64,000 nucleotides of DNA from Mytilus edulis (Eukaryota), in contig NC_092350.1 in assembly GCF_963676685.1 (NCBI RefSeq), positions 18,662,001 to 18,726,000 on the forward strand, written 5' to 3'. Under the pieces are notes generated by a model that worked only from the letters and a program-made list of their open reading frames with translations, was not told the origin of the DNA and did no database searches. Numbering within the stretch: position 1 is the stretch's first letter; each line of letters starts with the position of its first letter. The position numbers and the translations under genes are program-made. Below are positions 1 through 45,807 of the stretch, piece after piece.

Positions 1-2004
1 ACGCGTAAGATAATACACTACCTAATTACACATCAAATCATATCTTCCGCCGTATTGTACATTCTTCTGATGTCGACTTGTATTACATACTATTGTTTCT
101 GTGAATAGAAATAGCTGTAAAAAAAACCCAAAGAGATGTATTCGAATTAAAAAAAACTGTTATTTCCAATAATTCCGTCCCATAATAAAATGCGGTAAAA
201 CACTTGTTTTTTTTTTTAGTTATTATTATTACAAATAAAAGAGATATATATGCAATTACTATCATTGCGACAGCAACCTAACGGTACAAAAAATATATAT
301 AAAACTCATCTGAATAGAAAAATAGACGAGACAACATGTCAAGCACCAAAAATCGAATCTAAAATGTTGAGAATTTATCCGAGACTATATTTAAGATCTG
401 ATATATATATATATGAGCACCAAATTCTCTTATTGGCAGCAGGTACTTGAGGACAGGACTATTTTGATTTGCCGTACCCCTTTTTACCTTTTAATTTTAA
501 ATATTTTCAAGTTTTCTTTGTTAGTCTTACATAGATAATATATACTAGAAATCATATGTGTTTACTATATTAACTATATCAATTGCTAGTGTTAAAACTG
601 TCCAAAGGGAGCACTGATAATATACATACTTAAAATTGAGAATGGAAATAGGGAATATGTCAGAGACAAAAACCCGATCAAACAGCCGAAGGCCACTTGC
701 ATGCATATACTAGAAAAAAAATTGTTGCCCAAAAGCAATAACTAATATGAAATATATCTTTTAATAAATGTAGGCATGAGATTGCTGACATTGTTTTACC
801 TCACATATTTCTTTTTACAAGCGGTGTAGTCTTGGCGGCCTGTTAAAAAAACCTAGTAGTTTCAAGGTATGCACTCTTCCAAGATCTTACTTATATCAGC
901 CTTTGTTATAAACATAAAAAAAAATTGACAATAAATGTAGGTACGAGGGGGCTTACAATGTAATGTTCAATATAAAGTTAATTCAAAGATGCATGACTGC
1001 GTTGATTTTTGAACTCACCAAAGATGTTGCAGATATAAATTAAGCCTATGATATAAATTTAATAAAAATCCTACCAGAAATGTAGGTGTGACAGCTTTAC
1101 AATGCAATTTTCTATATAATTAATATCTCCATGATGCAGAACTCTTTTGGAAAAAAATGATCGGCACTAGTTTTGGAACTATTCAAGACATTACCCATAT
1201 TATAACCTTTGATATAGATTTCATAAATATTTTGCAACATTCACAGGCACTTGTCTCAGAAAAAAAAGTGTTATATTAAGGTATATAGGGGAAACAATTC
1301 TGAGACAAGTACCTGTGGGGAAATAAAATTTTGAATAAAATTTACATTTCCAAGGAACATTACTCTTAAAAATAACCAATGCTGAAAACGTGCGGGGACA
1401 ATACAATTTGTTTACTATCAATTTCTAGTTTACTATCCACAGAGGAATCACTATAAATCATTGAAAAACAACATTGAGTTTACACCAAGAAGGTTTTCGA
1501 TAAATTCGTCTTGGCTTGTGTAATGGTTAAAGAATGCGCAATCTTACAACCCCTCACACCCGAAACATTGATAAGACGTCCCTTAAAGATACATATACAA
1601 AAATGTATAAAGATGACTATATTTTTTAATATCTTATTTTGAAAGAGGAATAATAAATATCATGAATTTTGATTACATTAAAAAAATCAATCTAACATAA
1701 AGTTTAAAACAATCCTTGATATATAAACGTTTGTTTACCTAACATACTAAAGAAAAATACATTCTCCTTCTAAACATTCCAAAATTATTACATCTTAATT
1801 GCACATCGTTTGAGAACGCAAGGTAAACAGTTGATCATTCTGTTATTTTTAGTATCTCCCTACTACATTTGGATCTGAGTTTCTGATAATAATTCTCTCA
1901 TCTTCTACCACTAATTAAACAAAAAGCAAACGTGCGTGTTTGTGAAACACTTGCAGAAATCACGTTCAACTAACCGGATGCAGAAAGCAGACGATAGTTT
2001 CGAA

Positions 2005-2523
2005 ATGTCCAGCCGTATTGTTCCAGTTAAGCGTTATGATTGGAATTTTTTCGACAAGCAAATGGACATGTTCCCATCTTTCAAAAATGATTTCGACAAA
2101 AATTTTTTCAAGGATACCCAGCATTCAAGTATGGATGAAGAAATAGCAAGGATGAAACGGGAGATGTTCAGCCTGACAACACCCGAGTCAAGTTTGAAAG
2201 TAGATCAACCTTTTGTTCAGGATTTTACAGGAGATAAGAAAATGGCTCTACGGTTTGATTGCAGTCAGTTTAATCCTGAGGAAATTCAAGTAAAAACAAT
2301 GGACAAACAATTAACTGTACATGCCAAACATGAAGAAGTATCACCGGGAAGGAAAGTGTACAGAGAATTCACCAAGTCCTACACTCTACCACAGGATGTT
2401 GACCCTTTGTCATTGAAGTCCAGCTTGACCAACGACGGATTTTTACAGGTTGAAGCACCTGCGCCTAAAACATGTGTTGCAAGGAAGGAAATCTTTATTC
2501 CAATTGAAAAAATGCTTAGGTAA
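2005..2523 (+). CDS. Small heat-shock protein (Hsp20/alpha-crystallin domain), about 172 aa
   Basis: The ORF has alpha-crystallin motifs (FDCSQFNPEEIQVK, LTVHAKHEE, REFTKSYTLP, SSLTNDGFLQVEAP) and a C-terminal IxI motif (IFIPI). ATG at 2005 is preferred; an in-frame ATG at 1978 is the alternative. Confidence 0.93.
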   Translation: MSSRIVPVKRYDWNFFDKQMDMFPSFKNDFDKNFFKDTQHSSMDEEIARMKREMFSLTTPESSLKVDQPFVQDFTGDKKMALRFDCSQFNPEEIQVKTMDKQLTVHAKHEEVSPGRKVYREFTKSYTLPQDVDPLSLKSSLTNDGFLQVEAPAPKTCVARKEIFIPIEKMLR

Positions 2524-3907
2524 ATAATTCGAACTAAATAAGCCAGCAAATGCCAATTATATATAACATGCTGTGTTGGGAACCATCAGTGAGAAATTAT
2601 TTTGACCGTTTCGATGAGGCATTGATATTTTGTACAATATCAGAGATTTTTTTCGACCGATTCTATGATGCATTGATATCTATGTTACACTTTCAGAGAC
2701 TTTGGATAGTGCGCAAAATTTGACAATTATTTCAGCATTTTTTGCAGTTTTTAACTATTTTAACAATTAAAAATATATATGGTTTCGTAATAGCTTTGCA
2801 TATGTTATTGTGCATGTTTTGGACTAGCATTCCTGGATCGGTTTCTTTGAAACGACAATTATTTGAATTCAGTTGTATATGAAAATTAAAATGTATAAGC
2901 AATTATTTGTAAGTATTCTTTTAAAAGAAAAAGAAAAATACATTTTGACACCACCACCACTAGATGTGTTGTTCAGTGAAATTTATAAAAAACAATTTGG
3001 AGCGTTGCTGCCAAAATTTTCCATATTTTAAAGATATAATACCAGTATTGTCTATTCAATATAATTCAGTCATTTTATATTATGAGCCCACGATATATTT
3101 TGAAATTTATGTAATTTCAAGCACAAAGATGTACGCGTATATAATTTAAAAAAAACATACGCATATAAATTATACATCAAAGTATTAACTATATTTGCGT
3201 GTCCGTTGAAAATACAACTTTACAAACTTGAAGTTGAGTAGCTTGTTAGTACCCTCTCCCCCTAAAAAATAAATTAAAAAAAACATTTTTTTTTAATTTG
3301 TCATAACTATATAAACAAAGTTTTATTCCAGATGAGCTAAAACATTGATCCTAATGTAGGTTTTACCAATTATCTATTATTATTTAATGATAAACAGTTA
3401 TTAGAAAACATTTCCTCATCAGCATATATGCAGCTGAAATGGTCCACTTCATTTGAACTTTGCAGGGTAATTGTCAGATTGGCAATCACTCCATATCTCC
3501 TCTGACATTTTTATATGGGATGAAAATTCTAATCAAAATCCCAATAAACTGAGATTTGTCGCGACATTTAGAAGATCTACAAACTAGCAACAGTACAATG
3601 TAGTAGACAGTACTATATGCACTGTTCAGTGTAAGCGAGATATTTACTTTCAGGGTTTAAGGGCATACGATATAGTTTCGATCCCATATTGAAAATGTGC
3701 ATACAAGATAGAGGTGCAACCTTAAGTCAAAGTCAAAAGCAACATCCAATAGCCCTTCGTTGCTATATTGCATACACATATCTACGAATAGAAATTAGCA
3801 AATGCTCAAATCTTCACGACTATTTAAGACTTTTGTACTTCGATATGAAACCAATCATATACAAAATCATATTTGAAGACAGTGCTCAAATACAACTACA
3901 TACTAAA

Positions 3908-4211
3908 ACAAGAATTTGTTCATAGTACACTGATGCCCCATCCGCAGTATCATTTTCTATGTTCATTGGACCGTGAAAATGGGATAAAAACTCTAATTTG
4001 GCATTAAAATTGGAAAGATCATATCATAGGGAACATGTGTACTAAGTTTCAATTGGATTGGACTTCAACTTCTTCAAAAACTACATCGACCAAAAACTTT
4101 AACCTGAAGCGGGACAGACGGACGGACGGGTAACGAACGTACGGACGAACAGACGGACGAACGGACGCACAGACCAGAAAATATACTGCCCATAAATGGG
4201 GCATACAAAAA
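3908..4211 (-). mobile_element. Pearl/Helentron(HINE)-like non-autonomous element, family 1
   Basis: Reverse-complement copy of 32166-32460, with a (GACG/CGTC)n microsatellite, T-rich 5' flank and CTTGT 3' end. Confidence 0.75.
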
Positions 4212-5414
4212 TTTAAATTCATAATGCAGCTTTTCGTCCGATAGGTTCTCTGATGATAGGTTTGGCATATTTAGGTTTATGTTATATAGAAAACCATTAC
4301 ACGTAGAATACATAAGCATATTTAGAGTGGAGCAGGAGGCCTGGCCCTCTTATATAGCTAAATATAAGTGCCATTCCTGACGTCGTCTTGTCGGTTTCCC
4401 CCTTTTAAAATCCTGGATTCGCACCTGCAAATTATTTTTTATAGATAACATAGGGCTTATTGTTGTCGATTACAAATATATTGAACATTTTCATAAATTA
4501 TTGGTTTAATTAATTATTTTTTATTAGGGATTATCGTTGTCGATTTCAAATATATTTGAACATTTTCATAAATATTGCTTTAATTAAAAATTTCCTATAT
4601 AGAAAATATTTTAAGTTATTTAACGATGATATTAAAATATGTTTGCGTTACAGCAATTACAAAAAAAAGCAATAAAGTATGTGCATTTTACGGCTTATTA
4701 ATCACTGTACATCAACTCATTAATTTTCTTCTCGAAAACAATCCAAAGAAGAATGCAAAACAAAATGTCTGTAGTTTCAACAACGCAAATACAATAATCA
4801 AATGTCAGCAGGGAGATATATTGGAAGATAATTACAAACTTTTGATCGAGCTTTTGATGCACGTGGAATATGTATTAATTTTTAATAGTCTACGGTGCAT
4901 CAAACGTTAAGAAAATAGACAGAGTTTACATATCTTGGTACTTCTTATTGTTTTAAGATAAAGTCAACCACTTGCAAAACAGAACAGAACAAAATATCAC
5001 CCACCTCAAAGCCAAAATATCATGAAATAGCGCAACGTTAGATAAAGCAGATTTGTTAGTCTGCCAAATGCACTCGTTATGTTGATTAATTGTTCTGACA
5101 AAAACATACAAAAACACGAGCGTACCCTTGCTCCTGAACTTCCTCATTCTCTGCCTAACGACAGTAATTGATCTTTCTTACATAGATTCTATATAGCAAT
5201 GTCTCGTCACATTGTATATGAAAGTTGACCTTGGGAAGAGATTATAATTGATAAGGAAAGATGCAGCGTTGCGTAATTATTTATAATCGGTTGTCATGCA
5301 TGTACATAGTACGTACTTTTATCATGATAAACAAAATAATAAACACAATCGAATAACAGCAATGTTTGAGCTCTTGTTGTTTTTCATCTCAAGTTATTGT
5401 CCCTTTTCTTTTGC

Positions 5415-5650: not shown

Positions 5651-6551
5651 GAAATGCAGAGCAGGATATTTGAATATAAGAAGATGTGGTTTGAGTGAAA
5701 ATGACACAACTTTCAATCAAAATCACAATTCGTAAATGGTCAAAGAACATCCTTCAACAAGGAACCGAACAACAGGTTCCTAACTTATGATCGGTTTTTT
5801 TTTAATTATTATTCAAACAAATGCTGCAGATGTAAACGTTTATACAGGTACCAACCTTCACCCTAACCTGAAACAATATTAGTGTAAAATTACAAAATGA
5901 AAACAAGGAGAGAGATTTGTATGAGTGACTTGTCACTTGTTGTCCAATCCATGTATTGTATTTATGTACTTATTTGTTTATCTTTTACTGAATAATATAT
6001 TGTTTACACTAAAATAAAAACACACTATAAAATAGCAATACCAACTCAATATAAAGGCATATTAACAAAAAACAAGTAAACATACACTCAAGTCTGAACA
6101 AATACATTTGATTTTTGACACAATGTAATTACAACTGGTAGGACTAAGTTGTGATATCTGTTGTCTGTTGTAACATTGGATGAACTAGATCATCTATATA
6201 ATGATTCATCATGTTTGTGATCTGATTATTGAAGTTCAGGGCTGAATTGTAGTAAATTTTGCCAGGCCCAAAGTATAATCAAAATAATTTTTTTTAAAAG
6301 GTGTGAGATGTAAAAAAAAAATATATCAGAATGACAACCACAGGTAAATAAAAAATACTTTTTTTGTAAGGTATACAGGGAATACGGAAATATTTTTTTA
6401 CAAAATGAATAATTGAATTTTATTTGCATACCTTTTTGTATCTGTAGTACCGGCTATCATCCCCGGTTTTTAGAGGTGTCCGTGTTGCTCAGTCTTTAGT
6501 TTGTTTCGTGTTTTGTAGACTATTGTTTTTCTTTTCGTTGTTTTTGTCATA

Positions 6552-7021: not shown

Positions 7022-10000
7022 ATGGCAATGCAAAAAGCAGAGGCGTTGCCGTTCCTTACAGTAGAAGAGGCGATTAGAAGAAGTAAACAAACATTAAGGT
7101 ATCTTGAATTTATCGTTGTAATGTTATTTGAAAAAAAATAGTACTACATGCATACATTCATTTTTGTATAGGGGTAATACAATGTATCTCATTTTTACTT
7201 TCACATGCATATGTTTTCTTTCTTTGCTAATGCTTGTGTCTATTTGGATAAGGGCGGTAGTTTTATATACAATCATGAAGATTGTAAAATGTATGCTAAA
7301 AACTTTAACTCTATAATGAAATAACTTTAATCTAACAAGGTTTATTAAGGTTGTTTGAAGAACAGAATATTCAGATTCTAAAGGGAAAAAATTGATAATC
7401 TGCCGTGGCTTCGACCTACAAAAAAATGTTAAACAAAACTATGAAAACATTTAAGACTTGTTTGACTTAATAAAAAACCTTTACTAGAAATGCTTAAGAC
7501 CATATTTACATTATTGACTTGCTTTCTTCAAATAAAAAAAAACACATTTTTGCGAGTTAGATCAATAATTGACCTTTCATTGATTAAACCATCAAGATGA
7601 AGAGCAACAATCAAGGTATTGTTCTGTTGATGATAAATACATATAACGAGTTCAGCAGTTGAAAGAGAACGCACGTTTTGATCCAGAAAATATCTCTGGT
7701 ACATGTAGCAATACGCAGCTAAGAAATTATTATAACTTAAAATTGACAATCTGAATTTTAACCACTCTTTTCCGCCTGCTTTTTTGTTGTTGTAATAACT
7801 TAAGGGTTTCTGCTATTATCTGCTCTTTGGTCGGGTTGTTGTCTCTTTGACTTATACCCCATTGGCATTCTCAATTTTATTACCGTTTGTGTCATGCATG
7901 TATATGAAACATGAAATCCAATACTTTAGAAAGTGAAATATTATCTCTTTTGGTGTAATCATGGCAACAATTGAATTTATTTAATAAATTTGAGCGATAC
8001 CTTTTCTGAAACCATTTACAACTATTTTACAAGAGGCCAAATACAAATCATATGCATTTTACCATATTTCTCTATACTTATCAAATTAAAAAGATCGAGC
8101 GTATTTTTCAAAAACATTTTTTGTATATTTACTCAAACTAAAAAAAAAATGATTCGCAAACTAGATATCGATATAGTTATGTAATTTTTGATACTGTACA
8201 ACGTCATAGGTTCCAAGAAGAATTGAGTTTGAGTATATGGGAAAGAGCGAGAATAGAATTGGTGTATATCAGAAATCTTAAAGAATGGATGGTATCTACA
8301 GGAAGCAAGTTAACCCCTATTTTAGGTATTAGAATATGGTATATTATATGAGCTGTGTCGGATTGAAATCGACCTTATGCATATCAACATCGAAAAATCT
8401 GTAAACTAATTTGGATTTTGAAAAAAAATCAAAGAAAAGTCTGAGAATGTTGACAAGTTGAATTGTTAATTATATGTTACAAAACGGACCAAACTTGATC
8501 TTTTATTTCATTGCATTTCGTATACGTATGGTCCATGACCAATCAGAGTCTTTTAAATGTAGATATTTACATACACTTGCATAAAGTCGATTTCTATCCG
8601 ACGCAGCTCATATATAATTGGAGATTATATATTTCATAATACATGTATAGTTACCAGATTTTTAATAGAATTGTCATACATGTAGATTTCTATCATAATG
8701 ATTATATAATGTACTCTAGATCTCACAAACTATCGGTGAAAACATGTCAAAACTATAAGAAATAACATTCTGAAATTTAATAAACTTGGAAAGAAAATAC
8801 GGGTTGGCATTTGCTATACCGAGCGTTAGTTTTACGCACTTATAAAGCACAAAGGTGTCAGTATTCACCTCAGAAACTTACAAAACCTTTGAATAGACTT
8901 ATTAAGAAATATAATTACGATACTGTTGTCAAGTCATTAAAGATTGCATATTTTGGCGTTAATATTGAGTCACTGATAAGGTCTTTGCATCGGAACTAAA
9001 CACATTCATTCTAAAAACAGTTGTTGGCATGACACGGGTTATGTTCTTCTCATATATGTTATGATGGTATGATACTAAACCCCTAACGGGAAGGATTGTG
9101 CCTGATGTTCATATGATGAAATCATAATCTTTCAGTCAGTTTAATTGAAGTCTGGAGCTGGCATGTCAGTTAACTGCTAGTAGTCTGTTGTTATTTATGT
9201 ATTATTGTCATTTTGTTTATTTTCTTTGGTTACATCTTCTGACATCAGACTCGGACTTCTCTTGAACTGAATTTTAATGTGCGTATTGTTATGCGTTTAC
9301 TTTTCTACATTGGTTAGAGGTATAGGGGGAGGGTTGAGATCTCACAAACATGTTTAACCCCGCCGCATTTTTGCGCCTGTCCCAAGTCAGGAGCCTCTGG
9401 CCTTTGTTAGTCTTGTATTATTTTAATTTTAGTTTCTTGTGTACAATTTGGAAATTAGTATGGCGTTCATTATCACTGGACTAGTATATATTTGTTAGGG
9501 GCCAGCTGAAGGACGCCTCCGGGTGCGGGAATTTCTCGCTACATTGAAGACCTGTTGGTGACCCTCTGCTGTTGTTTTTTACTTGGTCGGGTTGTTGTCT
9601 CTTTGACACATTCCCCATTTCCATTCTCAATTTTATTATAATTAATATTGTGCATTGCTATTTACGGAATGACTAAACTTTGTCACACAATCCAATATTT
9701 ATGATATATTGTAACTTTGATCACCATTATTGTATGACATCTTATACTGTTTGTGTCTGATAAGTTGAGTCTTTGTGGCTGGATATTGATTGTTTTATGT
9801 GTAAATATTATAATTCATGTATATGTTTTATGGCAATTAATATGTGACACTTAATAAACAAATTTATATATTGTCACATATTTGCGTTTTGTTTGAATAT
9901 ATTTTTTATAAATATTTTTAACAACATAGACTTTAAATTCTGCTTTAAAATATTTGACGCTATTGTTGTTATAGAAAAGGCAAAAGATTTTACTGATGAA

Positions 10001-13000
10001 ATGGTATTGAAAAACTTAGTGAAAGAAGCATTATGCACGACAGAGGTCCATCAAAATGTCCACAATGCTATGATGTGCTCTGGTGGACCATACTCAACTT
10101 TACAAAGGTATAGTGTCCCCTATTATGTATAGGTCTGATGGACCATACTCAACTGTACAAAGGAATAGTGTCCCCTATTATGTATAGGTCTGATGGACCA
10201 TACTCAACTTTACAAAGGTATAGTGTCCCCTATTATGTATAGGTCTGATGGACCATACTCAAATGTACAAAGGTATTGTGTCCCCTATTATGTATAGGTC
10301 TGGTGGACCATACTCAACTTTACAAAGGTATAGTGTCCCCTATGATGTATAGGTCTGGTGAACCATACTCAACTTTACAAAGGTATAGTTTCTCCTATTA
10401 TGTATAGGTCTGATGGACCATACTCAACTTTACAAAAGTATAGTGTCCCCTATTATGTATAGGTCTGGTGGACCATACTCAACTTTACAAAGGTATAGTG
10501 TCCCCTATTATGTATAGGTCTGGTGGACCATACTCAACCTTACAAAGGTATAGTGTCCCCTATTATGTATAGGTCTGATGGACCATACTCAAGTTTACAA
10601 AGGTATAGTGTCCCATATTATTTATAGGTCTGGTGGACCATACTTAACTTTACAAAGGTATAGTGTCCCCTATTATGTATAGGTCTGATGGACCATACTC
10701 AACTTTACAAAGGTGTAGTGTCCCCTATTATGTATAGGTCTGATGGACCATACTCAACTTTACAAAGGTAAAGTGTCCCCTATTATGTATAGGTCTGGTG
10801 GACCATACTCAACTTTACAAAGGTGTAGTGTCCCCTATTATGTATAGGTCTGATGGACCATACTCTACAAAGTATAGTGTCCCCTATTATGTATAGTTTT
10901 TCAAGGTATAGCTTCCTCTATTGTGTATAGGTCTGATGGACATTAAACTATTTTACAAAGGTATAATTTGCACAAGGATTTTTATAGTAGTCACACTATA
11001 CAAATCCTTGATTTGCAAGTTATTATGCATTGGTCTGATGGGTCATACACCACTTTGCAAAGTATAGTTATCTATGTTCTATTAAGTAAAAAGTAGCATA
11101 AAAAGATATATTCAAATTCACCAAAGGACAATATCCACCGATTTAAGTAAATAAAATGTGATAAAAGGATAAAAGTATATAGTTAAATAAAAAATAGTGT
11201 TCTGAAGAGCCATACATCGATTATCTAACTCCAGTCACAATAGATATTCAAACTAGTCTGATGTACAGTAGTTGTCGTTTGTTTATGTAATTTATACGTG
11301 TTTCTCGTTTCTCGTTTTTTATATAGACTAGACCGTTGCATACCTGCCAACTGTCACTATTTGCGGGGGATTTCTCCCATGGAGGCTCCCAAATTGAAAT
11401 TTTGAAAGAGCAATTTTGTCCACAATTTTAAACAAAACAGTTAGTTTTACAATGAATCTAGGCTTATGAAAGCATGATGAAGCCAAAAAACAAAATTAAA
11501 ATGTATTTAAAGGCCTCCTTGAAGGTTTTTTATTTAGAAATATGACAGCCATCTTGAACTCAAAACCCCCATGGGCATTTTGAAAAGTTGGCAGGTATGC
11601 GTTGGTTTTCCCGTTTGAATGGTTTTACACTAGTAATTTGGGGCCCTTTATAACTTGTTGTTCGGTCCGTGTTGAAGGCCGTACATTTAACTATAATGGT
11701 TTACTTTTATAAATTGTTATTTGGATGGAGAGTTGTCTTATTGGCATTCACACCACATCTTCCTTTATCTAGTAAGTCGAAAAACAATCTGAGTTCATCT
11801 GACTGCAATGTGATGGCAAAAAATAAACACAGAGAAACGACCAAAATAAACAAAACGAAAGTACACAAAACACTAAATAAAAATTGAAAGACTGAGCAAC
11901 ATAAACCCCCACTAAAAAACAGTGACCTTAAGTTATTATATCACTATATTCAATTTATCGAAGTTGAAGTTGTATTTTTATAAATTAACCGTTACAGATT
12001 TTTGTTCAATACTTTTACATATATTTATCTTTTTTCCAGAGGAATTGGACTTAACAAGATAACTAAAAGTTCAGAAGAAAGGCTTCTGTCTGATGTAGAA
12101 AAAGAGTTTTATATGTTTAATAGAAAGAGAGTACAGTACGAATCTGATATTCAGAAAAAGAAAGTGGTAAGGAAAATACTTCTTTTCGGGGTTTTTGGGG
12201 GTTGTTTTGTTTTTGCCACAAGAAGTTGTGTCTTTTTGGAAGTGTATATATTCATTTATTTGTATTCAAATCACTTAATCATATGATCGATTTACTTGAC
12301 TTATAAAAAAACAAGATTTGATAATTCTAGATGAATCAAATACGACAATTTTTCCAAATATGTGCTTATGGGGTAAACATCAGCAATAGCAGTCCTACTG
12401 CAAGAAAATGTTATTATTTGCTTTTAAAAGTTGGCTTATTTGCAGAGCACTGAAAAAATGAAGTCAACTATAATTGAGCTTGAAGAACAGTTATCCAAAC
12501 GAAGCCGTATTGCGCATGTACGTCGGTCTACACGCTCCAATAGGAAGGTGGACAATCTCTCCAACAGACTATCAATGCTCAGAAAACAAATTGAAAGTGA
12601 AAAATCTATGACGGAGAAAAAACAAGAAGCGTTGAGCGAATTTATGTCCAGCATAGGCAAGGTAATTTCTCGTCTAGTAACTTCAAGTGAAAGAGCAAAT
12701 AATCAAAAGCATTCAAATTTATATAGTTTTGGTTTTTTGAAAAAAGTGTTCCATGAACAAAAAGTCAAAGAGTCGAAATACTTTGACACAATCACATATG
12801 GTATCTTCCAGAATGATCTAAATAGTGCAGGTTTCTCAATTTCCGTATTATCTTTTTCCACTTTACATTTTAGCTGTTAACCACGTCTTGACCCTCCTGT
12901 AGAGCTTTTATACGTTTTTTTTTTGTTTGAGGTCCTTGCGACCTTGCGTCATTGAACGTACAAACAAGATGGCGTAAGTCTTATCAACTATCTTGTTCAT

Positions 13001-16000
13001 GTTTGTGTTGATCAGCCTTATAATAAAGTTTTCTCTGTTGTGTTTGTAAACTGTTGTTTGTCTTTTGGTCTTTATAAAAGATTTTAGCCATGGCGTTATC
13101 AATTTATTTTCGACTTATGAGTTTGAATGTCCCTTTGGTATCTTTCGTCTCTCTTCTATTACAGGATATGAAGAAATTATATATAGAACTCACAGAACTC
13201 CAGACAAAAAGGATGCAGTTGATTTATTCTCAATTAAAAAAGTTTGGTTGTGCGTTCAAAGAGTTTAATCATGGTTACAAAAAGTAAGTGCTGACATAAA
13301 CAATACGTATTCCCCTTCAGATCAGCTAATTCAACGTTACTTGTTCTCTTATAAATCATAATCTCGTGATAGGCACGCGCTCTTAAACTTCAATGCCTCT
13401 ATAGTTGATGGATTACTATAATAAAACTTCAGATCTAAGAAGTTGTGAAGATTAAGGAAAGTTATTGTTCTACCTATTAGATTCTGTAATAATAGGAAGA
13501 ACGAAGATGTTGGATACATCTCAACGCGACAGAAAACCAACATCACAAAACATGAAAAGACATATTCATCTAGGTCAAATCATATTCTTGTATTTATGTG
13601 GGCGTGCATGAGAAATAAGCAATATTCTGTCAGATTTATGAAATTCAAAAGGGTCAAAAGTAAAGAGGATCTCGAAATCGACGCACAAAGGGCTTATCAG
13701 TGACGATTTTATAACCTTTGAGTTATTTTATCATTAAAAAAACGTCAGAAATGTTTAAGGTGATGGCAGGGGAGTTATGAAGTAAAACCAACTGTTTTCC
13801 TTGGTAATCACTGACGGTGTTCGTGCAATCAAAATCGTTTAAAGGATCTTTCGTATTGATTATTGTTTCTTTGCAGGAGGAAGACCGAGATCGGTGAAAT
13901 GATAGGTTCCTTTGAGTCCATTTGCATAGAGGAAATAATAGAACGTGTAAAACAAGAAATAGAGGCTAGAGCAAACACAAGAAAGAAAGGTCACATATTT
14001 GAGTTACAGGTATTAAATCGGTCTTTAATAACCAAAATCTTTTTAACTTTTGATATCTACGTCATTTAAAAACAAAATGTCGAATTTTGAAATTTCAAAA
14101 TTGATTTAATGTTTCTATTTCAAACAACCCTCGTCATTAGTAAATCAAAACAAACACTAATGCTGCATATACTTATAATAAAATTACACATATATCTTTT
14201 CTTAATTGTTTTAAACTTCCGAATGATGGTTTTTTTTCTATAGGAAATGTTTACTCCCATGAAAAACAACATCGAGCAAAGAAAGGACGCCACTCTCAGG
14301 TAGGTAGAATATATTTGAATGTTAAATATCTTTCTACAGTTCAAAAAATCTCGAAGTGCATTATAGGCAACTAATAACGTGCAATTCCATGGACACGAGG
14401 ATAGAATTACTGCATAATCCTGACTTATTATAGACATTTCTATGAGGAAAGAGTACATTAAACTAGTTTGACGACACTAGATGGCGTCAATTAGGTATTT
14501 TTCCAACTGTACAAATTTTTATAAGCATACTAATATATGATTTAGAGGGAGTTGAGTTCTCACAAAACAAAATTAACGCCGCAGCATTGTTGCGACTCTT
14601 CGTACAGGAACATCTAGCCTTAATTATATTCTTGTGTTGTGTTGAAGCCAGAATCCCAATGCGGGAATTTCTTTCTGCGTTGAACACCCATTGGTGGCCG
14701 TTGGCTGTGTTTCTCAGTTTGGTCGAGTTGTTGTCTCTTTGAGACATTTCCCGTTTCCATTCTCTATTCTATCCAATATAATTATCAAATATTACGGTAT
14801 TATACCTACTAATGTTTGGATCGTTCATGATTGCAAAATGGAAGATACTTGTTCTGCTACATAATAAATTCAACAAATAACACCAAAACGAGTCATAACA
14901 TTATACCATTTTCTGCATTAATTGTTTTGTTAAAACAATCTAAATAATGTGTTGATCATGCCAAAAAGAAAATTTCAGTATGTATTTTCATCACTTTTAG
15001 CGCATGTGCACTTCCAAAACAAGAAAAATTCAACAACACACATGCAGTACAGTCGATGATTGGGAGAACGCAGACGACTGTAGATAGCAGTGAAAGCGAT
15101 AATTTGTTGGTGGGAACTTTCTGTGCCTCTTCTTCAGAATCGATTAAAAACAAAGGAATGAATCCGGTCAGATGCCAACGATCCGAAAACTCCGGTAAAC
15201 TTATACTCAGTCGGAATTTTGTCAAATTTGTAACCAATTACTTTAGCATATATAATTCAGCGACCACAAATATCCTGAAAGACAATATTTTGATTTAAGA
15301 ACGTTATTTGTTATTTGTTGCATTCGGAATTAGTTTTACTTTTGTACATTGGCATTTTTTGTATTATATTCCCAATAGTGCCATTCTCATTTAAATCCTA
15401 TAACCTTTCCTAAAATTCACAAAATCTTGATGTGTGTGCAGGTTCTATCAACACCATCTCATATTTTCGAACATCAAATCCAATATAAATTCCTTGTAGA
15501 TAACTTAAAACTGCCATTTCGATAGATTTATGCAAACTTTGAATACTTATGATAAAAAGTGAAGACGACGGAATACACGTTCTGGAATTCTAATGAAAGT
15601 TAACTTAGCTATCTGTTATTTTTCTCATTAAATATATTTTTGTTTGGGACATCCTTCGATCCAAATATCTTATTAAAAATATTTTTTAAGGGCTTTACAA
15701 TTTTTTTTTTTTTTTTATTACATTTGTATTTATTAATTTTCGTGCGTATTTTAGTCTAGACGCCATCTAATTAACCATCGAGTTGACCTCTAAAGTCATC
15801 CGATGACCATATAAGCGATGTAAACGTAAATATAGATATAAATAGATAAAGTGAACGCGTGCTGTTGGATTTTTCTAGGTCCATTTAATTACATATTATA
15901 GATGAAAAAATCTTTATAAAAAAATCGCGTCTGTAATGAGGTGTAAAACTTTAATCTTGCAGATTCGTCGCTCGAATCAAAGATAGAGACAATTGTTATC

Positions 16001-23780: not shown

Positions 23781-26700
23781 ATGGACGAAATGAACGAAAT
23801 AGGAATAGGAATGACACCTGAACTGTTTGCTGCTGTATTTACTCTTTTATTGAAATTTTCATAGGCAACAATGAATGAAATTATTTTTTTCACTTTTGAA
23901 CCCGCTGTTGTATTATAATTCCTGCATCAGATAATCAAACATCTCATCCTCAATGCCTCTTTTCTGACCAAAATTATCCATCACTGCTTTATCTCTTGAG
24001 CCATGTATTAACCCAAAGCCTTTAGGGGTATGGTTGAGTCTTGGAGATGAAGAAAGCTATTTTTATCCTACTTTCACTTTGGTGAAACAACCTGTACTTT
24101 CACTTTCAACAATCATGGCAATCATTCTTTTCCCTCATATTTAATTAATATATTTCAGTATAGAAAATTTATTAGCACAAACACATAAGTTTACATGAAG
24201 TGAATATGGCATACAGTATATTAACCTGACAATGATTTAATTGAAGTGACAGCTAGTGATATACATGTATATATATGTCATAGTGACTTAATAGTTGGTA
24301 ACTATATTGGTAGACCATGATCAACATTATTACAGATGTGTATCTCCTTTTTTGATACATTGGATTTATTTCTCGGGTTTCCAATGAAAGATAACATTTG
24401 TGTGAAACTTGGTCATTTTTTGTGACAGACTTGGGGAATAGCTTTGGTAGAAAGGATGGAGGCTAGAATATATGAAGTAACATTATGTTTTCCCTTTATC
24501 AGATGCTGCAGCATCAGCAGGCAATGGGTGGTTTTATGTTTCCTGGAGAATCAGACGAGGATGAAGATGAAGAAAATGAGGAAGAAATACAAAGTAATAT
24601 AATTATAGCTTATTAATGCATTGTTTAAGCTACATGTAGTTTTAAATTAATGAGTACTTCATGAAAATAATTCCATTAGATATATTTCAAACCCATGAAA
24701 AGATATTGTGCATGCATACACCAAACATCAATGAGACAACACCCTAACAAAACAACATGAGCATGTAATGATAAGTCCGAGATTACTCTGGCGTCCAACG
24801 GCTGTTTTGCCAGACAAGCTGGGGCCCTCCCACGAGTAGAGATGACATCATTAATGATTGACTGATTTTTGGTTGCATATATAATGTCCAGTGTGTAATA
24901 TTTCAATATGAAGCATGTTCAGGACTAGATAACTTAAAATTAAATGCAATGAATAGATAGGTCCTATCATAGAGGCTGTTTTTGATGAAGGTCAGGAAAT
25001 TTGAACTACCACTTGGAAATGATGGTACATTGTATATTGAATAGGTTCGAAATTTCTCCTTGCAACAGGCCACTTTATAGAGTCGTTACAAGGTTTCTTG
25101 GTGTGCAAAGAGCATGGCATTCTCTTAACACCAGGCATCGGATTTAAAGTCTCTATTCTGACTGGGTATTGCTGCTCACTTGTACATAGTACAGCCAAAC
25201 AGACACCCCACTTTGGCAAGCCAATCTGAAGAAAACCAAAGTGCCCATATTTCTATTCCCCAGTCAATGTGTGAAATTCACTGTGAAAGACCTGATATTA
25301 AAGCAAACAGACAATGAAACTCCTACAATATTGTATGCTTTCCCAAAAAACTGAACAGTAACACTAAATTCCAGAAACTTTCAAGCTCTTATTTGTGTGT
25401 GCTAATTAAAAATGCAATAACAGTAGAAGCATATATATATATAAATTCAAATGTCATAGAATATTTAAAATTATTTTTTTAAACGATATTTATTGAAATC
25501 ATTCACTCATATTTTTTTTTTAATTTAATCAATACATTCATAATGATGATTGTGTTTGACTTGCTTCTGAAAATGCTGAACTAATGATTTGTTTGTTTAT
25601 AGCATGTTCATATTTTTTTTTTGTATTTTTTTTTTTAGACAATTCAGTATGATTAATATGGATCTGTTCCAATGATTTTTCAGAGTAAATGATTTGGATT
25701 TGAATATTTTTAATACTCTGCTTATATGTTTTTATTGAATTTTCAGATAATCCAAAGAAAAGAATATTATGGGCGGCAGAAAACAATCATTTAGACATAG
25801 TGGAATCAATTTTACAGTCTGACCCAGAATTGATCAAATCTTGTGACGATGACATGTATACTCCACTTCATAGAGCATGCTATAATGGTCATGTTGATAT
25901 GGTTAAGGTACACAAAATGTAGGAAAAACATGAAAAAATGAAAAAAGATTATTTGGACTTTTGCATTATGGATTTTAATCCCAAGGTCCAGGCAAATTTA
26001 AACATAAAATACAAAAAATGGGATAAAACAAGGGCAAATTAAGTTTTATGGGAAGAAATCGCCATCCATGAGAGACATGACAACCAAATCTACTCTTCAC
26101 AAGAGACCAAATGACACAGAAATTAACAATATATAGGTATATAGGTAACTGTATGGCCTTCAACCATGAGCTAAGCCCAAACCAAATAAACGGCCATAAA
26201 AAGCCCCAACAAATATAAAACAATTCAAAAGAGAAATCTAACGGCATAATTTGTGTTCAAATTATGAACGAAAAACAAATTTGTAACACAGCAACAAACG
26301 ACAACCACTGAATTACAGGCTCCTGCCCTGAGATACACACATACATACAGAATTTGGTGGATTTAATCATGTTAGCTGGATCCCAACCCTCCCCTAACAA
26401 AGGTATAATAGTACAATATCAGAGAAAACTATAAAAAAAAATCAGTTGAAAAAGGCATTACTCATCAGATGAATACAAATAGAAATACAACTTAACAAAA
26501 ACACAGAATCGATGCGGCGGGGTACTTGTGCATCCCAAAATAAAAAGACACTAAGTGTATATCTGAGAGTACTCACAGCTACTGACAAAGGTGTATTTAT
26601 AATATGTAAAGTGAATAAGTTCAACAGAGGCTATCATTGATGTTTTTTTTAAAACTTTTTTACAGTTACTGATAAGAAAGAATGCAGATGTTAATGCTAA

Positions 26701-28760: not shown

Positions 28761-29454
28761 TTTGAATATTAGTTTCAACTATTGTTAATACAGAAATTAT
28801 TAAGAGGTTTTTATGAATGCGAAAAAAGCAACTGAATAAGTATTGCAATAATAAGTACTCGTAATTTGATATCTGATAGTCATCATACATATATACATGT
28901 ATCTGTAGGAAGATTTCCAGATATCTGATAGTCTTCATACATATATCTGTAAGAAGATTTCCCGATATTGCATTAACTAATCAATTCTTAACATATCATA
29001 TAAATAAATGCACATTATAATTTCTGAATTTACAGTATGCAGTCTACAAGCTGTTACTTGTTCTAGCAATGTTCCAAATATTGCTGTTATAAGTTGTTGT
29101 GGGTTCTAACTACAGTATTCAAAGTACTGATATTAATAGTTGTGACAGTGTTTCAACAGTTATATAAAGTCATACCAGTTGTTACTAGAAACTAAATAAA
29201 GGCAACAGTAGTAACAATTGTTCAAAAGTCATAAATCGTTTTAGAGAAAACAAATCCGGGTTGAAACAAAAATTGAGGGAAACACATCAACTCTAAGTGG
29301 AAAACAAAGGAACTACAGGATCAGGTACTAAAGAACAACAACAAATTTTGCATATACTGATAGGGAAGCGTTTCGTTTGAATTGTATTCGGTTCACAAAA
29401 TGGGTGGCTGTTGACTCCATTTTTATTCCCCACAACAGACGAAATCAAAGCGGA

Positions 29455-30718
29455 CTTTAGTACCATTAAAACGTTTAATCCCGCTGCAAATATTTGCACC
29501 TGTTTTAAGTCAGGAATCTGATGTACAGTAGTTGTCGTTTGTTTATGTAATTTATACGTGTTTCTCGTTTTTAACCGGATTTTTGTGACAAAAATGTCGG
29601 TTATTGATTTGGGGATGTACGGCGGGCGGGCGGTCGGGCAGTCGGGCGGTCGGGCGGGCGGGCGGGCGGCAATCAAATGTTGTCCGTGCATTAACTCATG
29701 AACCGTTCAACCAAAGCTTTTAAAATTTTAATATGTTATTACTGACAACTATTCGAAGGTCAAGTTCAATAATGGCGATTTTGACTTTTACCGTTCAGGA
29801 GTTATGGTTCTTGAAAGATTGAAAAATGGAGTTGTCCGTGCATTTACGCATGAACTGTTCTACCAAAGCTTCCCAAATTTTAATATGTTGTTACTTATGA
29901 AAGAATGGAGGTCAAGTTCAATAATGACGAATTTGACTTTTACCGTTCAGGAGTTATGGTTCTTGAAAGATTGAAAAATGGAGTTTCCAGTCGTGTCCGT
30001 GCATTTATGCATGAACTGTTCTACCAAAGCTTCCGAAATTTTAATATGCTGTTACTGATGACAAAATGGAGGCCAAGTTCAATAATGACGATTTTGACTT
30101 TTACCGTTCAGGAGTTATGGTTCTTGAAAGATTGAAAAATGGTGTTTCCCGTCGTGTCCGTGCATTTTCTCATGAACCATTCAACCAAAGCTTTTGAAAT
30201 TTTAATATGTTGTTACATATGACAAAATAGAGGTCAAGTTCAATAATGACGATTTTGACTTTTACCGTTCAGGAGTTATGGTTCTTGAAAGATCGTAAAA
30301 TGGCGTTTCCATTCAGGTTGTTGCATTTACTCATGAACCATTCAATCTAAGCTTTTCAAATTTTTATATGTTGATACTGATGACAAAATGGAGGTCAAAT
30401 CTGATATTGACGATTTTCACTTTCACCATTCATCAGTAATGGTTCTTGTGATATTGCCAGGACACAAATAAATGTTAATAAATCCGGTTTGCTGTCGTTG
30501 TGACAGCCTCTTGTTTTTATATAGACTAGACCGTTGGTTTTCCCGTTTGAATGGTTTTACACTAGTAATTTTGGGTCTCTTTATAGCTTGTTGTTCGATG
30601 TGAGCCAATGCTCCGTGTTGAAGGCCGTACATTGACCTATAATGGTTTACTTTTATAAATTGATATTTGGATGGAGAATTGTCTCATTGGCACTCACACC
30701 ACATTTTCCTATATCTAT
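29455..30718 (+). mobile_element. Family C retroelement tail with partial twister-like core (29476-29523), interrupted by a HINE
   Basis: UAA-UCCC-GCU-GCAAAUAUUUGC-A-CCUG-UUUUAAGU-CAGG-A; downstream sequence matches 11257-11771. Confidence 0.75.
29570..30513 (+). mobile_element. Pearl/HINE-like element family 2, with 5 internal cores
   Basis: Same termini as 17582-18209; inserted in a T-run of the host element. Confidence 0.88.
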
Positions 30719-34427: not shown

Positions 34428-35036
34428 TTCAAGATTAAGGCGTCAATTATTTCGATTTCTATGTTAGTTTAACAGTGCTACCAAAACATTAAAATTAATG
34501 TACATATGTTACATGGTTAAAGTAATAATAGACATTAATTGTATAATTGCATGTCGTCTACATATACACTATTCGTGCAGCGTCGGAAAATATAAAACAT
34601 TTCTTACCCTGCACAATTATTTAATTTAAATTCAATACTGCAATTTAACATTGAACTTAGACGTATAAGTTTTTTCAAATCTTCTTGTTGAATTTGTATC
34701 TGAAGCGAAATTAAATGACTTTTAAACGTGTACCTAAATGAGGACATTATGTTTGATACATAAGTTAGTGACATATATTTTGAAAAATCAAACATGAAAA
34801 AATATGAGAGTGAAACTGCAATATCTATCATGTACTTTTGAGGATGTTATTTACATCCTGACTATATCTATTATTTTTGATACATATGTATTCGTTAATG
34901 AATATCCTCCATTATTTACCCACATACTGAAATAAGGTCAAATATCTGAATGATTATCTCCTATATAAATGAAATATCTCTTTTTTCATTTACCATAATA
35001 TCATAGTATAAATCAGATACACCTGATCGGACTAAC

Positions 35037-36954
35037 ACCCTCAGGTGTGTATCTAATCATTTACCCTCAGGTGTATATCTTATCATTAACCCTCAGGTGT
35101 ATATCTTATCATTAACCCTCAGGTGTGTATCTAATCATTTACCCTCATGTGTGTATCTAATCATTTACCCTCAGGTGTGTATCTAATCATTTACCCTCGA
35201 GTGTGTATCTAATTATTTACCCTCAGGTATGTATATAATCCTTTACCCTCAGGTGTGTATCTAATCATTTATCCTCAGGTGTGTATCTCATCATTTACCA
35301 TCAGGTGTGTATCTTATCATTAACCCTCAGGTGTGTATCTAAGCTTTACCCACAGGGGTGTATCTAATCATTTACCCTCGGGTGTGTATCTTATCATTTA
35401 CCCTCTGGTGTGTATCTAATCCTTTACCCTCAGGTGTGTATCTAATCATTTATCCTCAGGTGTGTATCTCATCATTTACCATCAGGTGTGTATCTTATCA
35501 TTAACCCTCAGGTGTGTATCTAAGCTTTACCCACAGGGGTGTATCTAATCATTTACCCTCGGGTGTGTATCTTATCATTTACCCTCTGGTGTGTATCTAA
35601 TCATTTACCCTCGGGTGTGTATCTTATCATTTACCCTCTGGTGTGTATCTAATCCTTTACCCTCAGGTGTGTATCTAATCATTTACCCTCAGGTGTGTAT
35701 CTAATCATTTACCCTCTGGTGTGTATCTCATCATTTACCATCAGGTTTGTATCTTATCATTAACCCTCAGGTGTGTATCTAAGCTTTACCAACAGGGGTG
35801 TATCTAATCATTTACCCTCGGGTGTGTATCTTATCATTTACCCTCTTGTGTGTATCTAATCCTTTACCCTCTGGTGTGTATCTCATCATTTACCATCAGG
35901 TTTGTATCTTATCATTAACCCTCAGGTGTGTATCTAAGCTTTACCAACAGGGGTGTATCTAATCATTTACCCTCGGGTGTGTATCTTATCATTTACCCTC
36001 TTGTGTGTATCTAATCCTTTACCCTCAGGTGTGTATCTAATCATTTACCCTCTGGTGTGTATCTCATCATTTACCATCAGGTTTGTATCTTATCATTTAC
36101 CCTCTGGTGTGTATCTAATCATTTACCCTCGGGTGTGTATCTTATCATTTACCCTCTGGTGTGTATCTAATCCTTTACCCTCAGGTGTGTATCTAATCAT
36201 TTACCCTCAGGTGTGTATCTAATCATTTACCCTCAGGTGTGTATCTCATCATTTACCATCAGGTTTGTATCTTATCCTTTACCCTCAGGTGTGTATCTAA
36301 TCCTTTACCCTCTGGTGTGTATCTAATCATTTACCCTCAGGTGTGTATCTCATCATTTACCCTCAGGTTTGTATCTAATCATTTACCCTCAGGTGTGTAT
36401 CTAATCCTTTACCCTCAGGTGTGTATCTAATCATTTACCCTCAGGTGTGTATCTCATCATTTACCCTCAGGTTTGTATCTTATCATTAACCCTCAGGTGT
36501 GTATCTAAGCTTTACCAACAGGGGTGTATCTAATCATTTACCCTCGGGTGTGTATCTTATCATTTACCCTCTGGTGTGTATCTAATCATTTACCCTCAGG
36601 TGTGTATCTAATCATTTACCCTCAGGTGTGTATCTCATCATTTACCATCAGGTTTGTATCTTATCATTAACCCTCAGGTGTGTATCTAAGCTTTACCAAC
36701 AGGGGTGTATCTAATCATTTACCCTCGGGTGTGTATCTTATCATTTACCCTCTTGTGTGTATCTAATCATTTACCCTCAGGTGTGTATCTTATCATTAAC
36801 CCTGATGTGTGTATCTAATCATTTACCCTCTTGTGTGTATCTAATCCTTTACCCTTATGTGTGTATCTAATCATTTACCCTCAGGTGTGTATCTAATTAT
36901 TTACCCTTATGTGTGTATCTAATCATTTACCCTCAGGTGTGTATCTTATCATTT
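35037..36954. repeat. 26-bp satellite, about 74 copies, with higher-order structure
   Basis: Unit gtgtgtatctaatcatttaccctcag; a 25-bp variant (aagctttacc) recurs at 35341, 35522, 35781, 35936, 36507 and 36688. Confidence 0.96.
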
Positions 36955-37142
36955 TCATATTCCTGACTTGGTACAGGCATAAAATGTCTTTAAAAAGAAT
37001 AATACATATTTACATAATAATAATAAAATTGAGAAAGAAAATAGGGAATATGTCAAAGAGACAACATCCCGACAAAAGATCAGACAACATAAACATCTCA
37101 AAAGGTTAATTTGGCTTAAACCTACTTAAACAAATGTGATTA

Positions 37143-37314
37143 AGCTATATTTCTCTGAAAAACTTGAGAAAGGAAAATATGACAGGTTAATGACAGATAA
37201 GCATAGTGTGAGGAAAAAGGGGTGAAGAGTTTAACTCCAGTTTAAATTCAAAACCATAGAATTTGTTGTCAATTCACAGAAAGAGATGTGTGAAATGAAA
37301 ACCGCTCGATTGGA
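37143..37314 (+). pseudogene. Inverted fragment of the C1qDC 5' coding region
   Basis: Aligns by eye to about 34215-34379 (LYF.EK.EKG...FKTIEFVVNSQKEMCEMKTARL), with indels. Confidence 0.85.
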
Positions 37315-37609
37315 TATGGAGAATATGTCAAAGAGACAACAACCCGACCAAAAAGCAGACATCATTAAAATCCCGAAAGGTTAATTGGTTTATACCTACT
37401 TAAAAAAAAGAGACAACGGAACAGTTACCAGCATTTAAAATCAATCAACTTTTTGTTATTCTTCCGTTACATGTATAATCAGTGAAAGGGTTACGGAAAT
37501 TATAACTTAAAAAGTGTTACAGGAAAGGAAACAAAGCTATATCAAAAAGCAAAAATAATCGTATATTTAACCACACTTTTCATTCTGACATATAAACGTA
37601 AATCAAAGT

Positions 37610-45013: not shown

Positions 45014-45807
45014 CAAGAAGTTAGCAATATCCTTTAACTCTTCTTTCCTCTATATAGATGATGTTCTTTCACTAAATAATTCAAAATTTGGTGACTATGT
45101 GGAACGCATCATTCCCATCAAACTAGAGATAAATGATACTACAGATACAGTTAAGTCGGCCTCATATCTTGACTTACATCTAGAAATTGACAATGAGGGT
45201 TGGTTGAAAACAAAACTTTACGACAAAAGAGATGGTGAACTTTCCATTTCTAAGTAGCAACATTCCAGCAGCACCTACATACGGGGTATATATCTCCCAA
45301 TTGATACGATATTCCCGTGCTTGCATTTCCTATCATGATTTTTTTTATAGAGGGTTGCTGCTCACAAGGAAGCTATTAAACCAAGAGTTCCAAATGGTGA
45401 AGTTGAAATCATCCCTTCGTTAATTTTACGGACGCCATCACGAGTTGTTTGACCGTTATGGAATAAGCGTTTCACAAATGATATCGGAAATGTTCCTTAC
45501 GTCGTAATTACAATCCCCTTCCCTTTCATGAATGTGGCCTACCGAATTAGACTATTTACTGGATTTGTTATCACATAAACAACACGACGGGTGCCACATG
45601 TGGAGCAGGATCTGCTTACCCTTCCGGAGCACCTGAGATCACCCCTAGTTTTTGGTGGGGTTCGTGTTGTTTATTCTTCAGTTTTCTATATTGTGTCATG
45701 TGTACTATTGTTTGTCTGTTTGTCTTTTTCATTTTAGCCATGGCGTTTTCAGTTTATTTTAGATTTATGAGTTTGACTGTCCCTTTGGTATCTTTCGTCC
45801 CTCTTTT
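45014..45807 (+). mobile_element. 5'-truncated Naiad-like PLE family B
   Basis: YIDDVLSLNN (YIDD at 45051-62), SYLDL, KLYDKRD, VNFPFLSSNIP, YGVYISQLIRYSRAC; the ORF ends with no C-terminal endonuclease; one deletion and one premature stop. Confidence 0.8.

Follow-up and report, generated by a model that had tools for sequence, protein, structure and literature searches.

A Naiad-type retroelement tail with a selenocysteine-insertion hairpin and a predicted twister ribozyme fold

Naiads are the one group of Penelope-like elements (PLEs) reported to lack the usual hammerhead ribozyme. Does a single 3' region of such an element carry both a selenocysteine-insertion hairpin (SECIS) and a ribozyme fold of another class? 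This question was raised by a locus in a 64,000-nt stretch of Mytilus edulis DNA (GCF_963676685.1, NC_092350.1, positions 18,662,001 to 18,726,000 of the forward strand), hereafter the window. The first-pass annotation placed an ORF stop, a SECIS and a twister-like fold in one PLE 3' UTR, and proposed that this lineage recodes UGA as Sec and uses twister rather than hammerhead to process its RNA. Each feature was confirmed where it had been placed, and the interpretation was supported, although cleavage and Sec insertion remain inferences. The three background facts given in that annotation are all found in Craig et al. 2021 (PMC8557442): Naiads have an N-terminal endonuclease and a C-terminal RT, Sec-Naiads occur in clams and spiders, and no canonical hammerhead was found.

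The locus and its family

The features of the locus, in window coordinates, were as follows.

8840-8999 (+): last 53 codons and TAA stop (8997-8999) of the Naiad-type EN-RT ORF; the copy is 5'-truncated at 8840, so it is dead.
9051-9115 (+): form-2 SECIS, with AUGA at 9061-9064, AAA at 9077-9079, GA at 9104-9105 and an apical mini-stem at 9080-9092.
9312-9402 (+): type-P5 twister fold. P5 is 9312-9321 with 9393-9402, P2 is 9325-9328 with 9358-9361, GAGGG is 9329-9333, P3 is 9364-9367 with 9372-9375, P4 is 9376-9379 with 9388-9391, and loop UCCCAAGU is 9380-9387. T1 pairs 9362-9363 with 9386-9387, and T2 pairs 9331-9333 with 9381-9383.
9335-9344 (+): palindrome 1 (UGAGAUCUCA), at the place of the 3' strand of stem P1.
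9346-9355 (+): palindrome 2 (AAACAUGUUU), at the place of the 5' strand of P1, ending at N-1.
9355-9356 (+): predicted twister cleavage site, between U9355 and A9356, from the position in the Rfam Twister-P5 alignment.
9403-9637 (+): 3' tail of the family, whose last ~70 nt are shared with other repeats of this genome.
51129-52630 (+): older, decayed copy of a related family, with RT residues 176-479, stop, SECIS relic, an insertion, twister relic (52332-52399) and tail.

The last 53 codons of the ORF were 98% identical to the C-terminus of the family's RT ORF. To test whether the UTR was linked to the RT in other copies, 30 genomic copies were fetched. They were 90-100% identical, all 30 carried the whole UTR, and 22 of them continued upstream into the ORF with different 5'-truncation points. 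At least 89 RT frames were 98-100% identical, and nearly all were open for exactly 480 codons, that is, bounded upstream by the conserved TGA. The genome contained 2,829 exact copies of the 68-nt twister core and 2,058 exact copies of the 65-nt SECIS, compared to 0 for the reversed controls. In these lists the SECIS and the twister recurred exactly 274 nt apart, as in the window. The older copy joins its RT to the same UTR.

Longer copies and metagenome relatives, whose source organisms are unknown, encoded one ORF of about 1,000 codons with an N-terminal GIY-YIG nuclease, a CxC motif, a DKA motif and an RT. SCNCS and DKAANN were visible in the translations. A Pfam search of the TGA-bounded ORF pieces of the window's family gave no significant family. 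However, in the TGA-free relatives L086 and L092, Pfam found GIY-YIG at residues ~138-230 and RVT_1 at ~740-870. The unit is about 4.02 kb, and 5' truncation and a tandem or pLTR layout were also observed, as described for Naiads (main body 3.4-4.4 kb). Metagenome contigs had exact terminal repeats with the tail abutting the 5'UTR, and in two loci (L047 and L063) the twister lay on both sides of the ORF. No hammerhead hit was obtained at E<=5-10 in the UTR or in whole units. The Naiad-type assignment rests on architecture, without an RT phylogeny against named PLE clades.

In-frame UGA codons and the SECIS

ORFs of 1,000-1,083 codons had no TAA or TAG but 2-6 in-frame TGA. Five of six TGA alignment columns contained only TGA or Cys, and homologous proteins had Cys at the RT position. 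Rfam SECIS_1 matched 9051-9115 at 32.3 bits (E 0.0003 in a 1.1-kb scan), and hits of 27-32 bits lay directly after the stop in 9 loci. These scores are below the gathering score of 35, and a whole-window Rfam scan at the gathering threshold found nothing. However, the hairpin was conserved with covariation: 88% of SECIS pairs were paired, 13 of 18 pairs changed on both sides, and 0 of 500 shuffles reached this.

Our own SECIS model hit about 33 loci, all on the RT strand and with at least ~49% RT identity. It hit none of the loci at 36-46% identity, and the two complete ORFs examined from that group had no TGA. Five tRNA-Sec genes scored 77-79.6 bits in the genome, with a cut-off of 47. In intact copies the ORF contains four UGA codons at conserved cysteine positions. 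From this comparative evidence we infer that they are read as selenocysteine with the help of the form-2 SECIS, which sits 52 nt after the stop.

The twister fold is kept by compensatory change

Rfam Twister-P5 matched 9325-9391 on the + strand at 23.1 bits (gathering score 37.6, E 0.0033), and only when 131 nt were scanned alone. A whole-genome scan with RF02684 gave no usable hit in 1.37 Gb. The flanking 10-bp P5 stem was present in the minimum-free-energy fold (z = -3.1). The helix GGGUUGA/UUUAACCC of the minimum-free-energy fold is a competing alternative and not part of the twister. Our own twister model gave about 40 hits at E<0.01, all on the RT strand and lying 3' of the ORF or on both sides of it. 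The twister lay about 200-380 nt 3' of the SECIS, and about 210 nt in the window. One locus (L097) was misplaced by MAFFT, and the alignment was rebuilt without it.

Across 25 sequences, 92% of cells were paired compared to 72.8% in shuffles, and 19 of 26 pairs changed on both sides. The covariation score was 0.487, against 0.149 shuffled and at most 0.082 when partners were slid. P2, P3 and P4 were paired in 95.5%, 96.9% and 99% of cells, with double changes in 3, 4 and 2 pairs, respectively. The columns of these three helices come from an alignment fitted to our model, and P2 was irregular in some distant relatives (L086, L092 and clade 2). Interestingly, both pseudoknots covaried although neither was part of the model. 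T1 pair types were CG 10, AU 8, GU 4, GC 1 and UG 1, and T2 pairs included GC, AU, UA and GU. A P5 of 10-20 bp was found in 22 of 22 sequences, and its energy was -20.2 kcal/mol with its own partner compared to -6.8 with foreign partners. The unpaired core bases (GA of GAGGG, the N^AA cleavage site and U..AAG of loop 4) were kept in 23-25 of 25 relatives, with A+1 kept in 24 and A+2 in 25. The fold was supported in relatives down to ~40% RT identity. Its helices and both pseudoknots are kept by compensatory change, so the fold is under selection.

There is no stem P1 in cis, since the two segments at its place are not complementary. They are two palindromes that stay self-complementary through their centres. 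Palindrome 1 was perfect in 25 of 25 relatives, with at least 17 sequence variants. Small hairpins would not explain this, since the centres covary and loops would be impossible.

Taken together, 8840-9637 is best explained as a 5'-truncated, non-autonomous remnant of a young, very abundant Naiad-type PLE in a bivalve-like genome; this reading, together with its Sec and twister parts, has a probability of roughly 0.8. The unit comprises a 5'UTR, one ORF and the 3' region. The twister most likely self-cleaves between U9355 and A9356 in transcripts of tandem or pseudo-LTR arrays, although this is inferred. This would yield unit-length RNA that keeps ORF and SECIS on one molecule, the role proposed for hammerheads in canonical PLEs. 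However, genomic insertions keep the ~235-nt tail 3' of the cleavage site, so the RNA that was reverse-transcribed was not cut there, or was re-joined. As a hypothesis, the palindromes probably pair with the same palindromes of a second ribozyme copy, giving a dimer or the two copies of one tandem transcript. A literature parallel is the dimeric PLE hammerheads (PMC6765202).

Alternative readings and comparison with known systems

The alternative that survives best, and remains possible, is that the twister cleaves as a monomer while the palindromes serve another purpose or act at the DNA level. P1 is reported to be dispensable (PMC11662667), so a dimer is not required for activity. Furthermore, palindrome 2 is sometimes of odd length or has G-U at its centre, and the co-fold gain is generic for domain swapping. 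On the other hand, the two central positions of palindrome 1 covary (CG 9, AU 7, GC 5, UA 1) and cannot pair with each other within one hairpin, and the sequences are too varied for a protein site.

It is unlikely that the RNA is conserved only as a structure, for recognition or priming by the RT or as a dimer-linkage site through the palindromes. The low Rfam score, the sequence retained on both sides of the predicted site and a possible resemblance of the palindromes to dimer-initiation sites are in favor of it. However, the conserved bases are the catalytic-core positions of twister, and both pseudoknots are maintained by compensatory change, which a purely architectural RNA would not need.

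It is very unlikely that the TGA codons are true stops (pseudogenes, or separate EN and RT cistrons) beside a fortuitous hairpin. The sub-threshold SECIS_1 scores allow it, but TGA alternates only with Cys at five conserved columns, the frames lack TAA and TAG, the positions are identical to published Sec-Naiads, SECIS presence tracks TGA presence, and the family is young and prolific. A chimera with an unrelated SINE or retrozyme, suggested only by the ~70 nt of tail shared with other repeats in the window, is highly unlikely, since the order of stop, SECIS, twister and tail holds in every family copy examined and in relatives down to ~50% RT identity, the twister is also present in TGA-free relatives at ~40% identity, and the 274-nt spacing is fixed genome-wide.

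A more far-reaching reading is tentative and somewhat less likely than not. Naiad-type PLEs may carry a twister that has given up its own P1 for two palindromes and becomes fully structured only when two copies pair, as two RNAs or as the two pLTR copies of one tandem transcript. Two unrelated ribozyme classes would then have converged on the same dimer-gated way of cutting unit-length, possibly circularisable, RNA out of tandem retroelement transcripts, and in the Sec lineage ORF and SECIS would stay together.

Canonical PLEs always carry hammerhead ribozymes, and Naiads were the puzzling exception. A conserved twister in Naiad tails would fill that gap, give the twister class a second biological context in eukaryotes after Schistosoma Perere-3, and make the model of tandem transcript, paired ribozymes and unit-length or circular RNA testable with a second ribozyme. 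The finding extends selenoprotein-encoding transposons to a mussel-like genome, where thousands of 5'-truncated copies scatter intact SECIS hairpins and ribozyme motifs. These could become a source of new selenoprotein 3'UTRs and of self-cleaving sites inside host transcripts. Sec-Naiads were already known, whereas no paper in the library searched links twister to PLEs or describes this combination.

The selenoprotein-encoding Naiads of clams and spiders (Craig et al. 2021, PMC8557442) share the N-terminal GIY-YIG, CxC, DKA and C-terminal RT, the absence of a hammerhead, 5' truncation and the tandem or pLTR layout. UGA falls at the Cys before GIY-YIG, at the first Cys of CCHH and 8 residues after DKA, and a SECIS lies just after the stop. 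The present elements come from a mussel-like genome and marine metagenome relatives and have extra Sec positions (the second Cys of the CX2-5CxxC finger here, and the CxC motif in relatives). Their SECIS is form 2 and sits 52 nt after the stop, whereas type I at 1-21 nt was reported, and a twister ribozyme, which that paper does not mention, is present.

With Rfam Twister-P5 (RF02684) and SECIS_1 (RF00031), all conserved core positions align. Both score below the gathering cut-off, for the twister because of the P3 insertion and the missing P1.

The minimal hammerheads in pLTRs of canonical PLEs (Cervera & de la Pena 2014; Lunse et al. 2017; reviewed in PMC6765202) are likewise small self-cleaving ribozyme motifs in the repeated 3' or pLTR part of a PLE, once per tandem unit, with one stem replaced by palindromic sequence, which suggests action as a dimer. 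Here the ribozyme class is twister, not hammerhead, its self-cleavage is inferred, and the palindromes replace P1 as two separate blocks.

A twister-class ribozyme has also been tied to a retrotransposon and proposed to process its transcript. Those are variant twisters at the 5' end of a LINE-like element, with P1 supplied partly by the target-site duplication, whereas here a canonical-core P5-type twister lies in the 3' or pLTR region of a PLE.

Element structure and family
The first-pass annotation placed an ORF stop, a SECIS fold and a twister-like fold in succession and linked this UTR to an RT in a second copy, and the features were confirmed at these positions. The following features were identified in the window.

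8997-8999, TAA stop codon of an ORF.
9051-9115 (+ strand), Rfam SECIS_1 match with 32.3 bits (gathering score 35), with AUGA, AAA and GA in place and an apical mini-stem, so that it is a form-2 SECIS.
9325-9391, Rfam Twister-P5 match with 23.1 bits (gathering score 37.6).
9312-9321 with 9393-9402, a 10-bp stem that closes the twister motif and is present in the minimum-free-energy fold (z = -3.1).
51129-52630, the second copy, which joins RT residues 176-479 to the same UTR.

The Twister-P5 match was obtained only when the 131-nt piece was scanned alone, and it was missed in the 1.1-kb and whole-window scans.

The window lies in a 1.37-Gb genome with 14 large contigs. All 30 fetched copies were 90-100% identical over 8840-9636, and 22 of them continued upstream with different 5' truncation points, whereas the window copy was cut exactly at 8840. 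Seven longer copies shared up to 3.55 kb. Comparisons were made among natural copies only. Translation displayed one frame with, in order, a CX2-5CxxC finger, a GIY-YIG core (IIY..YVG), a KR-rich linker, a CxC motif (SCNCS), DKA, and the RT motifs up to the stop. In two TGA-free relatives, Pfam placed GIY-YIG at residues ~138-230 and RVT_1 at ~740-870. These are the diagnostic features of Naiads as listed by Craig et al. 2021 (PMC8557442), on which the assignment was based in place of an RT tree against the named PLE clades.

The metagenome contig L038 was 98% identical at the nucleotide level, and its RT was 99% identical. It added the missing 5' end, which consists of the element's tail, then ~385 nt, then an ATG that opens the same frame. 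Furthermore, five metagenome contigs (L038, L039, L040, L063 and L067) had exact terminal direct repeats of 77-145 nt and closed on themselves, with units of 4.02-5.63 kb overall and 4.02-4.03 kb for this family. This is the signature of head-to-tail tandems or circular forms. In the locus L002, an inverted partial copy (2468-2817, - strand, 92% identical) lay tail-to-tail next to the + copy, which is the complex insertion pattern described for PLEs.

Comparative evidence for selenocysteine
The window's family has four in-frame TGA codons, which were retained in every long copy. At least 89 genomic RT frames were 98-100% identical, and nearly all were open for exactly 480 codons, that is, back to the TGA that lies 8 residues after DKA. 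In one genomic copy (contig C10, 84257476-84258912, - strand), this TGA was replaced by a sense codon and the RT frame stayed open for 703 codons. Among the 80 metagenome loci that encode relatives, read-through ORFs of 1,000-1,083 codons had no TAA or TAG but 2-6 TGA. In an alignment of ten such ORFs, five of the six columns with TGA held only TGA or Cys, and database homologues had Cys at the RT position. Three of the positions are those reported for clam Sec-Naiads, namely the Cys before GIY-YIG, the first Cys of CCHH, and 8 residues after DKA.

SECIS_1 hits of 27-32 bits lay directly after the stop in nine loci from two clades. On a MAFFT alignment of eight of them, 88% of cells paired and 13 of 18 pairs changed on both sides, and no shuffle or slid control came near these values. 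A model built from them found the element in about 33 loci, always on the RT strand and always in relatives with at least ~49% RT identity. It found none in the 36-46% group, and the two complete ORFs of that group have no TGA. The genome has five tRNA-Sec genes at 77-80 bits, four on contig C7 and one on C1. An array of about 45 or more tRNA-like genes spaced ~895 nt apart was also observed (C10, 14401393-14442259, and C945). These scored 45.9 bits against the tRNA-Sec model, just under its cut-off of 47, and are probably another long-arm tRNA. Therefore, Sec recoding is strongly supported by comparison, though not shown biochemically.

Predicted twister and its palindromes
A strict pattern, and then a covariance model built from nine cores, found the same architecture in about 40 places in the metagenome loci at E<0.01. 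All were on the RT strand, and most lay 200-380 nt 3' of the SECIS. In the loci L047 and L063 it lay on both sides of the ORF, and in L067 and L086 it also lay upstream, which is the pLTR position. The motif was also present in TGA-free relatives. L086 (ORF 1785-4808, twister upstream at 1293-1370) and L092 (ORF 176-3235, twister downstream at 3408-3480) carry complete Naiad-like ORFs of 1,007 and 1,019 codons without any TGA and without a SECIS. It was further present in the more distant L083, L097, L104 and L111, where no SECIS was found. The ribozyme is therefore older and more widespread than the Sec habit.

On the 25-sequence alignment, 92% of cells paired, compared to 72.8% in shuffles, and 19 of 26 pairs showed changes on both sides. 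The covariation score was 0.487, against 0.149 for shuffles and at most 0.082 for slid partners. P2, P3 and P4 come from a model-fitted alignment and so lean towards the structure, but the pseudoknots T1 and T2 and the palindromes were not in the model. T1 showed CG, AU, GU, GC and UG pairs. T2 showed GC to AU and UA switches, for example GAAGG with UCCUAAG, GAGGU with UACC, and GAAGA with UUCUAAG. The closing stem P5 had unrelated sequences in different lineages but always paired, with an energy of -20.2 kcal/mol with its own partner compared to -6.8 with foreign partners. Its own partner was the best in 17 of 22 and ranked in the top 3 in all. The unpaired core bases were invariant. This is the pattern of a functional ribozyme, although cleavage itself was not tested.

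Between GAGGG-UU and the cleavage site there was no pairing in cis that would form P1. Instead, two palindromes were found. Palindrome 1 was a perfect even palindrome in 25 of 25 sequences, with at least 17 different sequences, and its two central positions covaried (CG 9, AU 7, GC 5, UA 1). Central bases cannot pair with each other within a hairpin, and the sequences are too varied for a protein-binding site. Pairing between two copies is therefore the simplest reading. Palindrome 2 ended at or next to N-1, and was perfect in 15 of 25 and of odd length or wobble-centred in the rest. Co-folding favoured dimers by 8-18 kcal/mol, which is weak evidence. However, P1 is reported as dispensable for twister activity (PMC11662667), which argues against the necessity of a dimer.

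Based on these results, the following mechanism is proposed by inference. A transcript spanning more than one unit would hold two twisters about 4 kb apart. Their palindromes would pair, both would cut, and a unit-length RNA would result that begins at A+1, runs through tail, 5'UTR, ORF and SECIS, and ends at N-1 with a cyclic phosphate. The insertions end at the tail and not at the cleavage site, and this was not resolved by the proposed mechanism. Having the SECIS 5' of the cut would keep it on the coding RNA. Such ends could be ligated into a circle, and reverse transcription round a circle would explain the partial tandems.

Abundance and comparison with known systems
The 68-nt core occurred 2,829 times and the 65-nt SECIS 2,058 times exactly, with 0 for the reversed controls. 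The two repeatedly lay 274 nt apart, as in the window. The window itself also holds the following related sequences and neighbouring repeats.

29451-29515 (+), 5778-5863 (-), 56690-56765 (+) and 26321-26394 (-), further decayed twister-like motifs hit by our model at 19-50 bits, which look like relics of other Naiad families. The one at 29451 resembles the lineage of metagenome loci L042 and L043 but has lost GAGGG.
45033-45483 and 60630-60939 (+), fragments of a more distant Naiad-like RT (38-62% aa identity per aligned piece) inside a two-copy repeat (45266-45565 / 60737-61036, 91% identical).
7809-7881 and 14660-14772 (+), and 631-682, 37022-37089 and 37308-37352 (-), the last ~70 nt of the element tail, alone or attached to other repeats. 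These may be extreme 5' truncations, or other (possibly SINE-like) elements that share the same 3' end.
9969-10983, a minisatellite with a 55-nt period and about 18 copies, which starts ~330 nt 3' of the insertion.
34933-36200 and beyond, a long tandem array with a 26-nt period (60 registers reported).

Twister is never mentioned by Craig et al. 2021, and no paper linking twister to Penelope-like elements was found in our full-text searches for twister with Penelope-like, Naiad, retrotransposon or bivalve. A 2024 survey lists bivalves among the taxa with predicted twisters, without context. Twister variants are known at the 5' end of Schistosoma Perere-3. Furthermore, canonical PLE hammerheads likewise have palindromic sequence, in their stem III, and are thought to act as dimers helped by the tandem layout (PMC6765202).
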